Below, piece after piece: positions 48,701 through 58,865 of a DNA stretch of 64,000 nt. The notes beneath the pieces are model-generated. The model was not told the origin of the DNA. It searched no databases and worked only from the letters and a program-made list of their open reading frames with translations. This stretch comes from Octopus sinensis (Eukaryota), in assembly GCF_006345805.1 (NCBI RefSeq), contig NC_043023.1:5828001-5892000 (forward strand). The letters run 5' to 3'. The position numbers and the translations under genes are program-made. The stretch's first letter is position 1. Every line of letters begins with the position of its first letter.

Positions 48701-51700
48701 TATGTTTGTGTGTCTGTGTTTGTCCCCCCAACATTGCTTGACAACCGATGCTGGTGTGTTTACGTCCCCATAACTTAGCAGTTCGGCAAAAGAAACTGAT
48801 AGCATAAGTACTAGGCTTCCAAAGAATAAGTCCTGGGGTCGATTTGCTCGAGTAAAGGCGGTGCTCTAGCATGGCCACAGTCAAATGACTGAAACAAGTA
48901 AAAGAGTATAGGTGCAGGCATGGTTCTGTGGTTAAGAAGCATCTTTCCCAACCACATGGTTCCAGGTTCAGTCCCACAGTGTGGCACCTTGGGGAAGTGT
49001 CTTCTACTATAGCCTCAGGCCAACCAAAGCCTTGTGAGTGGATTTGGTAGATGGAAACTGAAAGAATCCCATCATATATGTGTGTGTGTGTGTGTGTGTG
49101 TGTGTGTGTATTTGTGTGTTTGTGTTTTTCCTCCTGTCATTGCTTGACAAGCAATGTTGGTGTGTTTATGTCCCATGCAAGTATGGAAAAGCGGCCGTTA
49201 AAACAATGGTGATGATGATGTTGATGAAAGCAATGATGATAGTGTTGGTGTTGATGATGATGACAATTACATATCTTTTTTGTCTCCTACCAGATGTGGG
49301 CTTTGCAGGAACCAGTGGCTGGTTGTATGGAATGCTGGTGGCGCTACTAATCCTTGTATGTATTGCTATTGCACTGTACGTACTACGGGAGAAGATATCA
49401 GAGCGAAGGCGCGAGTCTTACAAAAAGAACATGGGAGGTAAGTTGTGTGAAGTAATCTTGTTTTAAGACAAAAGGAAGTACTCTTGTTGTGGGAAGACCC
49501 CGGGAAGTTAGTACCGATATTGATATGCATTGGTAGAGTACTGTACTAGCAAGCTTGATTGGTCTGTTGCGCTGGGGAAACAATTATAAAATTGATTACC
49601 TTTGCAAGAGGTTGCGTGAACCCTTAAACTTTATCAAACAGCTACTGGCAGTTTGTCGGTTACGATGACATGGGTTCCTGTTGATTTGATCATGAAAGTA
49701 ACATGCAAGTGGCTGAGTACTCCACAGACATGCGTACCTTTAATGTAGTTCTCAGGGAGATTCAGCATGACCCAGAATGTGACAAGGCTGGCCCCTTTTG
49801 AATTACAGGTACTAATCATTTTTACCAGCTGAGTGAACTGGAGCAACATGAAATAAGGTGTCCTGCTGAAGGACCCAAACCCTTGACCTTACAATCAGGA
49901 GCCAACTACTTTGACCCCCAAGCCATGTGCTTTCATAATCCTCTCAGATATATAATATGGAATTTGAACTTCAATCTTTAGTTATTTTGAAAACCTGCAA
50001 ACTTAAATCATAAAATATATAATCATGCAACTAACCCCTACTCCCTAAAATTACTGGCCTTGTGCCAAAATTTGAAGTCATTATTATTGCTGTTACCTTA
50101 ATATAAATGTGGGGCCAAGGTGGGCTGGAAGTATAAGGTCTGTGACATCATGCAAACAGTTGAGGGATCTTGCTGGAAGGAGAGGAGCAAGGGAGAAACA
50201 TGATGAGCATGACCCTTTTTTTTGGCTTCGGGGCTGTCACTTGGGGATGGATGTAGTGACTATGTGAATTTGGGAATTTTCCATTAGGGTCTGGCCAAAG
50301 GTTAGGCAAGTAGGACTCCCACAGATACAGCCCAGCTGGAAAGGATCAATGCTACAAGAAACCTGCAATGTAGGTAAATTGTGCTTTTCCCTGCCATAAC
50401 AAACAATTTGTGAAGTCATGATCAGATCTGTAAAGGTGGCACAGATGGTAAAACACTGAGCAGGAATTAATTTTGTTGATTTCTGATTGAGTTCATATCC
50501 TGCCAGTCAGCTTCAACATTGGTCCGCAAGAAATATTTACCATATTCTGTTCTCTAGATTTAAGCTACTCCAACACATCATCTCTTTGTGTTTCAGTACA
50601 AATTATATTATGCAAAAGAAATTTATACAGGTCAACGGGTCACAAACTGGGGTACATGAAAACTCATATAATGAGGTGGGCTGAGATGGCAACAAGAACA
50701 GTATATGGTGCTTAGTATATAGGATGAGGGGAGAGATTTTGGTACATAAAGCGATATAGAAGGGAAAATCACAAGAGGTAAGTTGTTTAGGATACTGTTG
50801 ATACTTCTAGTTGGAAAGGAAGTACTTTCATATTCTTAAGATGGAAATATTGGGCTGACCGGAAAGTTCGTGCCGATTTATAGTAGCTTACCTTTCGACT
50901 TATTTTAGAACATGGATGAGTCCATAAAATAGGATTTGACTACACCTCCATTTAGAGCACAGTTTAAGCTATCTTTTCGTGGAAGAAGGTTTATGTACCT
51001 ATAACCTGTGTTAATTCTGTAACCCTTTAAAATGGAAGATAAGAAAGTTCATTTTCGGCACTTGATGCTTTGGGAACCAGACAAAAATTGCTAAAGCTCA
51101 ACTGGGATGTGTTACTCCACCCTCCATATTCACCAGATATTGCTCCTTCAGATTTCCACTCATTCAGGTCTCTGCAGAATAGTCTTAATGGTAAAAATTT
51201 CAATTCCTTGGATGACGTAAAAAAAGATACCATGATGAATTCTTTGCCATGAAACCACCTCAATTCTGGGAAGAGGGTATTTTCAAGTTAAAGGAAAGAT
51301 GGAGATGCATTGTGCAACAAAATGGTTCATATTTGGTTGATTAAAAATGTAATGGCAAATATTTATTGACCTTTTTCTTTCCTTTAAAAATCGGCATGAA
51401 CTTTCCAGACAACCCAATAGTAGTTTCATCATATATACTCTTAAGCCGGAGCCTCAACACCAGTTACAGTCTGAAGTAAATTTAAAGCTAGTTTGATTTA
51501 TGTGCCAAGCTGAAGAATAAGCTCTGGGGTAGGTACGAGGGAAGGCGGTGAACTGGTAGAAACGTTAGCACGCCAGGCGAAATGCTAAGCCGTATTTCGT
51601 CTGCCGTTACGTTCTGAGTTCAAATTCCGCCAAGGTCGACTTTGCCTTTCATCCTTTCGGGGTCGATTAAATAAGTACCAGTTACGCACTGGGTCAATGT

Positions 51701-58865: not shown

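Follow-up and report, generated by a model that had tools for sequence, protein, structure and literature searches.

The canonical L1 family among the cell adhesion molecules (CAMs), represented by Drosophila neuroglian, L1CAM, NrCAM, neurofascin and CHL1, shares with the octopus gene described here the order of Ig and FN3 domains, five FN3 repeats, a single transmembrane (TM) segment and a dibasic site in the third FN3 domain. The link between the FIGQY motif and ankyrin has been kept in this family from cnidarians to vertebrates. Two invertebrate members are the most informative for comparison. The L1CAM LAD-2 of C. elegans has, in its LAD-2L form, a tail of 40 aa with no known motifs and no ankyrin-binding motif (PMC2213605). 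Leech Tractin contains an ankyrin-binding motif, four FN3 domains, acidic and PG/YG-repeat extracellular domains, a cleavage site in its third FN3 domain and a C-terminal SSFV, and a protease site in that domain is stated to be a feature of the L1 group (PMC2139938). The xS/TxV ends of Tractin, NrCAM and Nrg180 have been described as PDZ ligands (PMC2139938, PMC4384726). Here we analyzed a stretch of 64,000 nt from Octopus sinensis (contig NC_043023.1; the whole stretch is referred to as the window), which carries the greater part of an L1/neuroglian-type gene. An initial annotation of this DNA had joined the L1-type ectodomain to a short cytoplasmic tail of only 56 aa.

Compared with the canonical proteins, the octopus gene is without the Pfam Bravo_FIGEY domain and FIGQY and has no evident GGKY, and the tail of its Octopus bimaculoides ortholog is 2-2.5 times longer, while the xS/TxV C-terminus of that ortholog is of the same kind as in Nrg180 and NrCAM. 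LAD-2 resembles the octopus protein in combining an L1-type ectodomain with a tail that has no ankyrin motif, but the molluscan tail is long, acidic and Tyr-rich with a PDZ-ligand-type end, and orthology between the two is not expected. Tractin, a lophotrochozoan protein like those of molluscs, has a similar L1-like Ig/FN3 region, the cleavage site in its third FN3 domain and a comparable C-terminus, whereas in the molluscan proteins there are five FN3 domains and the ankyrin motif is missing.

The largest exon (21970-22341) was used as the query of a HMMER search against 1.84 billion representative proteins, and it matched an O. bimaculoides 'neuroglian' protein (P0007) with 88% identity over that exon. 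The 90% cluster of P0007 consists of six O. bimaculoides 'neuroglian' entries (XP_014776254.1, XP_052833792.1 and UniProt A0A0L8H183, A0A0L8H1C5, A0A0L8H1M8 and A0A0L8H2Q2). All window exons except the Ig6 exon and the proposed terminal exon at 58811-58865 could be aligned in order to the O. bimaculoides locus (L001) at 86-97% nucleotide identity, and the syntenic intron blocks between the two showed ~87% identity. The exons are colinear, the proteins are 82% identical over 948 aa, and the same TM exon, optional cassette (cassette A) and GSK...GYVNDG exon are found in both. By sequence comparison, the window is the locus, in a related octopus, orthologous to the O. bimaculoides gene that carries the annotation 'neuroglian'. 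The 5' exons (signal peptide and Ig1-2) and those of the 3' tail, which the O. bimaculoides models have, are not in the window. The explanation we favor, with a probability of about 0.82 for its parts taken jointly, is that the window starts inside the gene of an octopus L1-type receptor and ends inside an intron, thus holding the 3' two-thirds of the gene; the true 3' exons, predicted to encode the remaining ~167-184 tail residues, would lie beyond base 64000, and the complete tail would be long and FIGQY-less with a PDZ-ligand-type end.

The six O. bimaculoides isoforms provide the reference for the tail. In all of them the order is the TM exon, optional cassette A, GSKAHIDNSSDFRDDIGYVNDG, optional cassette B (GRRYGTSVNDRLTKETS) and a last exon of 167 codons (HDDSSIHK...GYYGDGYYGDGYYGDGY...DDGAYEEYQRK...HNVMTTFV), giving tails of 205-248 aa. 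Cassette A is used in P0007, P0153 and P0155 and skipped in P0151, P0152 and P0154, and a direct join of the 49437 to 55518 type is also used in annotated O. bimaculoides proteins. The position equivalent to 55581 splices in all six isoforms to exons lying 11.3 kb (L001 68834-68878) and 17.1 kb (74636-75139) downstream. One syntenic block lies at 55429-55774 (L001 57330-57659), and two more follow 55581, namely 59237-59502 (64032-64298) and 60334-61238 (64832-65772). As the last of these blocks ends at L001 65772, before both distal tail exons, base 64000 falls inside a long intron. Meanwhile, no match to the distal tail of the ortholog (the cassette B and TTFV exons) was found anywhere in the 64 kb window.

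The securely encoded tail in the window therefore amounts to 39 aa, or 65 aa when the cassette at 52279-52356, overlooked in the initial annotation, is included. The two exons of that annotation at 49294-49437 and 55518-55581 proved correct together with their phases and translation (95.8% and 85.9% nucleotide identity to O. bimaculoides), and the latter is present in all six isoforms with its FRDDxGYVNDG core conserved. The same cannot be said of the short tail itself, since the orthologous isoforms carry 205-248 aa and their last exons map beyond the window. Most likely, the 56-aa tail is a real 39-aa stub closed by a chance open reading frame (ORF), which makes it a window-edge artefact. 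A LAD-2-type protein with a short (~40 aa) divergent tail is not what we observed here: the ankyrin motif is absent, but the ortholog tail is several times longer.

The 56-aa tail was closed by the proposed terminal exon at 58811-58865. Within 55700-63990 we counted 483 AG sites, 42 of which have an equal or better polypyrimidine tract (that of 58811 is 9/14) together with at least 18 open in-phase codons. The proposed exon is no better than chance, about one of forty equivalent candidates, and it is unsupported. Its 17 residues showed no similarity to anything searched. No such ending occurs in the six O. bimaculoides isoforms, nor in the abalone or scallop proteins, and its terminal SNIC is not of the xS/TxV type. 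The NDGY and YDEV motifs, to which the initial annotation had assigned a signalling role, depend on this exon.

It should be pointed out that several observations weigh against the explanation favored above. In O. bimaculoides, the counterpart of window ~56.5-59.2 kb consists of 6,015 N (L001 57764-63778), so that conservation and the annotation of that species are both silent on an alternative short 3' exon there. The acceptor of 58811-58865 is usable, and 445 nt past the stop comes an AATAAA (59310). The distal exons themselves are outside the window, their position being read from synteny with another species, and the public O. bimaculoides models are imperfect, being without Ig6 and including intronic junk. 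Furthermore, that the tail would bind PDZ domains and not ankyrin is deduced from motifs only. Because the in-phase AG acceptor opens an 18-codon frame followed by the AATAAA, because alternative 3' exons are known in Drosophila nrg (Nrg167/Nrg180, PMC4384726) and because the annotation of O. bimaculoides could not have found an exon within the assembly gap, 58811-58865 might be a genuine minor alternative 3' exon, producing a short (56 or 82 aa) LAD-2-like tail beside the long-tail form. Considering that the other 42 AG sites in the same 8.3 kb are equally good, that the pyrimidine tract is just 9/14, that the ending is absent from all six orthologous isoforms as well as from abalone and scallop, and that the 17 residues resemble nothing, we regard such an exon as unlikely.

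The lack of FIGQY, also reported in the initial annotation, was confirmed. A six-frame scan of the window for FIGQY/FIGEY/GGKY-like peptides gave none except an Ig-domain GGRY and chance matches in repeats. With Bravo_FIGEY (PF13882) at E≤10, no match was obtained in the tail encoded by the window, whether cassette A was included or not, in the full O. bimaculoides tail, or in the tails of Haliotis rubra (XP_046562214) and Mizuhopecten yessoensis (XP_021340443). The tail of P0127, which reads KRNRGGKY...FGEDGSFIGQY...ATFV and served as the positive control, scored 92 bits (4e-26) on the same profile. On these scans, the absence of the ankyrin-binding FIGQY module from the molluscan neuroglian ortholog tail is real.

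Two resemblances proposed for the tail were compared with a canonical tail. The 12 residues that had been aligned loosely to FxEDGSFIGQY do not form the optimal alignment; the best one pairs KKNMGG...(D/E)FRDDxGY with the membrane-proximal KRNRGG...DFPDDGGF of the canonical tail, and it is itself not significant (277/2000 and 160/2000 shuffles reach its score). KKNMGGSK does resemble KRNRGGKY, the stretch with the juxtamembrane K-GGKY (FERM/ERM-binding region), and seeds this best local alignment, with 8-14% of shuffles scoring as high; the tyrosine of KNMGGSKTY, a stretch likened to GGKY in the initial annotation, is not found in O. bimaculoides (KKNMGGSKAH). Given the non-significant shuffle test, neither alignment is taken as evidence of homology. 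Comparison of the tail with PDB sequences gave chance-level hits only (KIF21A coiled coil, E ~0.1). A word-index search with the canonical tail returned only arthropod, priapulid or unnamed proteins of ≤210 aa, and the same index missed the known O. bimaculoides tail.

The family assignment of the ectodomain was examined region by region. Pfam identified four Ig (I-set) and five fn3 domains in the spliced model, followed by a 22-residue TM helix, and the ~220 N-terminal residues for Ig1-2, which complete the six Ig domains of an L1-type ectodomain, were supplied by the O. bimaculoides ortholog. Among PDB sequences, neurofascin Ig1-6 scored 197 bits, compared with 152-180 bits for the contactin-1 and contactin-2 Ig1-6 constructs over the same residues; similarly, Drosophila neuroglian FN1-2 scored 133 bits, compared with 92 bits for contactin-4 FN1-3 over FN1-2. 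From Ig3 to FN5 the model runs colinearly with P0127, the two being 35% identical over 919 aa. Within FN3-3, RKKR↓S agrees with the dibasic site described for the L1 group and is a putative cleavage site. The region-by-region scores, colinearity and domain order thus support an L1/neuroglian-type ectodomain, as the initial annotation had stated, with neurofascin, the contactins and Drosophila neuroglian FN1-2 as the closest solved relatives.

If the ectodomain belonged instead to a contactin-like or other immunoglobulin superfamily group, the absence of FIGQY would simply be expected. This reading draws on full-length contactin-2, which gave the highest total PDB score (245 bits); that total, however, reflects a longer solved construct, and by region neurofascin and neuroglian score above the contactins. 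Five FN3 domains and a TM helix are found where contactins have four FN3 domains and a glycosylphosphatidylinositol (GPI) signal, Ig3-FN5 is colinear with a protein bearing Bravo_FIGEY, a dibasic site lies in FN3-3, and the xS/TxV ends of the orthologs match those of NrCAM, Nrg180 and Tractin. A different family is hence very improbable. Contactin membership in the strict sense (six Ig, four FN3, GPI anchor, no TM segment or tail) was rejected, as the protein has a fifth fn3 domain, a TM helix of 22 residues and a tail in the cytoplasm.

Exons were defined by AG/GT borders, compatible phases, an open frame, nucleotide identity to L001 and matches to O. bimaculoides proteins. Seventeen well-supported exons on the plus strand encode Ig3-Ig6, the five FN3 domains, the TM helix and the first cytoplasmic part (Table 1). 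When the 15 upstream exons are joined to the three of the initial annotation, 18 AG/GT exons result, with a single open frame of 984 aa. That the gene is truncated or decaying in this species, its short tail being real through loss of the downstream exons, is the least credible possibility of all. Nothing speaks for it directly except that the window does not show those exons; every one of the 17 exons is intact, splice sites are canonical and the frame is undisrupted, and by synteny the window simply stops within the orthologous long intron.

Table 1. Exons and related features of the neuroglian-type gene in the window (nt id, nucleotide identity; aa id, amino-acid identity)
Feature	Coordinates	Strand	Evidence
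Exon, Ig3 first half (by homology)	681..783	+	AG/GT, open frame; 93.2% nt id to L001; matches P0007 residues 223-257
Exon, Ig3 second half	1734..1927	+	91.8% nt id to L001; P0007 match
Exon, Ig4 first half	4186..4320	+	96.3% nt id to L001
Exon, Ig4 second half	6500..6643	+	95.8% nt id to L001
Exon, Ig5 first half	10372..10553	+	93.4% nt id to L001
Exon, Ig5 second half	14078..14168	+	92.3% nt id to L001
Exon, entire Ig6	18372..18659	+	AG/GT, open frame; best Pfam I-set stretch, residues 286-377; colinear with abalone and canonical neuroglian
Exon, FN3-1 and beginning of FN3-2	21968..22341	+	88% aa id to P0007; 92.0% nt id to L001
Exon, remainder of FN3-2	26690..26924	+	91.5% nt id to L001
Exon, FN3-3 first part	29442..29563	+	89.3% nt id to L001
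Exon, remainder of FN3-3 with dibasic RKKR↓S at 37739-37753	37652..37889	+	90.3% nt id to L001
Exon, FN3-4 first half	39810..39932	+	91.1% nt id to L001
Exon, FN3-4 second half	43935..44117	+	94.0% nt id to L001
Exon, FN3-5 first half; second in-frame AG at 46172, 6 nt downstream	46166..46288	+	95.9% nt id to L001
Exon, FN3-5 second half	47422..47580	+	94.3% nt id to L001
Exon, TM helix (49320-49385) and 17 juxtamembrane residues	49294..49437	+	ccag acceptor, GTAAGT donor; 95.8% nt id to L001
Cassette exon, 78 nt, phase 1-1, 26 aa, YxxPhi-type YNFV at 52323-52334	52279..52356	+	AG/GT; 97.4% nt id to L001 55786-55863
Cytoplasmic exon, 22 aa, last supported in the window	55518..55581	+	ccag acceptor, GTGAGT donor; 85.9% nt id to L001; 15/22 aa identical
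Start of long intron running past the window end	55582..64000	+	Synteny with L001; no distal-tail match in the window
Terminal exon of the initial annotation, unsupported	58811..58865	+	tcag acceptor, TGA end; chance ORF or at best unverified alternative 3' exon

The window has an intact Ig6 exon, which is missing from all six public O. bimaculoides models. When Ig6 was used as the query against L001 no match was found, and a 1.4 kb run of N (33655-35063) lies between the flanking exons; the public models are without Ig6 because of this assembly gap. The hole is plugged in these models with intronic sequence, one stretch of which corresponds to window 15569-15748 and contains a stop there. The intact exon would thus be useful for correcting the O. 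bimaculoides reference annotations.

The introns contain abundant repeats. In the tail introns, a mariner/Mos1-like element occupies 57576-58449, with 24-nt terminal inverted repeats, (TA)n flanks and a decayed transposase (HTH_48, 4.7e-14), and a second, internally deleted copy of ~570 bp with 35-nt inverted ends lies at 50848-51419. A 24-bp intronic tandem repeat, TGATATCCTATCTTGTAAAATGAT, is present at 53218-53505 in 12 copies of 100% identity, which points to an expansion in the very recent past. A SINE-like element (...GGTGAGCTGGCAGAAACGTTAGC...GTTCAAATTCCGCCGAGGTCGACTTTGCCTTTCATCC...) was found at 51668-51964, 53826-54050 and 54795-54945 and at many other intronic sites, among them 7773-7937, 19897-20100, 25100-25274 and 38463-38678; one of the sites consists of 2.9 tandem partial copies of ~110 bp each. 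A LINE-type retrotransposon fragment with a reverse-transcriptase domain (RVT_1, 5.6e-18) occupies ~33200-35950 in the intron of 8 kb that separates the FN3-3 exons, and its flanks (~31900-33400 and ~36000-37250) are TG/TA-rich, microsatellite-like stretches of >1 kb with a GC content of 27% and a GC skew of +0.38. Right after the FN3-5 donor, ~700 bp of GTA/GTT/GGT trinucleotide repeat (47590-48285) stay open in two plus-strand frames (240-292 codons, with runs of V/S/C/G), so that this stretch is ORF-like yet intronic.

Proteins from two other molluscan classes were compared with the octopus gene. The abalone Haliotis rubra neuroglian-like X4/X5 (XP_046562213/4) and the scallop protein (XP_021340443) are 43-45% identical and colinear over ~860-915 aa, and like the octopus ortholog they have FIGQY-less, Asp/Tyr-rich tails, ending in SSFV (abalone) and STCV (scallop). 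The O. bimaculoides tail is rich in Asp, Tyr and Gly with GYYGDGYYGDGYY repeats and ends in TTFV. Tyr makes up 12% of the tail in the three molluscs versus 5% in the control, and Asp 13% in octopus and 20-30% in abalone and scallop versus 9% in the control. The RKKR site present in the octopus window is absent in abalone. Alignment of the molluscan tails by MAFFT gave no reliable columns but the C-terminal V, their complexity being low. Judged from these sequences, a long FIGQY-less tail is common to the cephalopod, gastropod and bivalve orthologs and thus characterizes molluscs instead of being new in cephalopods; the divergent cephalopod paralog suggested in the initial annotation is not supported.

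By eye, each of the three molluscan classes shows a block of the form [DH]AYE[EPD]Y[QD][RK] at a distance of 38-50 residues from the C-terminus (DDGAYEEYQRK in octopus, DDHAYEPYQKS in scallop and RDAYEDYDRK in abalone). The [DH]AYE[EPD]Y block could be a degenerate remnant of DGSFIGQY, which we offer as a lead and not as a result. Since the annelid protein Tractin keeps the ankyrin motif, its loss or divergence on the molluscan line is suggested. It is conceivable, though we hold it to be rather doubtful, that molluscs in general, among them the cephalopods with their large brains and giant axons, have an L1-type receptor that lost the FIGQY-ankyrin link and bears instead a long acidic Tyr-rich tail of which only the PDZ-ligand end is ancestral; molluscs would then either be devoid of any FIGQY-bearing L1 or keep a hidden derivative of the motif in the last exon. 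In the literature searched, we found no paper on molluscan L1 tails or their missing ankyrin module.

As to how such a receptor may work, the L1-type ectodomain would mediate homophilic or heterophilic adhesion, by analogy with other L1 CAMs, and could be cleaved at RKKR in FN3-3. The full tail, taken from the ortholog, would be probably disordered over its 205-248 aa and varied by two alternative cassettes. Its TTFV end, on the motif, may couple the receptor to PDZ scaffolds in the cytoplasm. In vertebrate L1, the RSLE mini-exon creates the endocytosis signal YRSL. By analogy, the YxxPhi-type YNFV of cassette A may allow regulated endocytosis; the motif reads YNFV in the window and YSFV in O. 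bimaculoides. PDZ scaffolds and possibly tyrosine-based motifs would be used instead of the classical FIGQY-ankyrin link, and the switch to phosphotyrosine or endocytic signalling proposed in the initial annotation is to be taken as speculation.

The L1 ectodomain on a 56-aa tail thus arises mostly from the edge of the window and is best not pursued as a finding. What the locus does bring to attention is real but of modest interest: molluscan neuroglian orthologs, already public under that name, are without the ankyrin module that defines the cytoplasmic side of the L1 family. Should no further L1 with FIGQY exist in molluscs, it may be asked how cephalopod axons anchor L1 CAMs to the spectrin skeleton, and whether PDZ- or tyrosine-based coupling has taken over.

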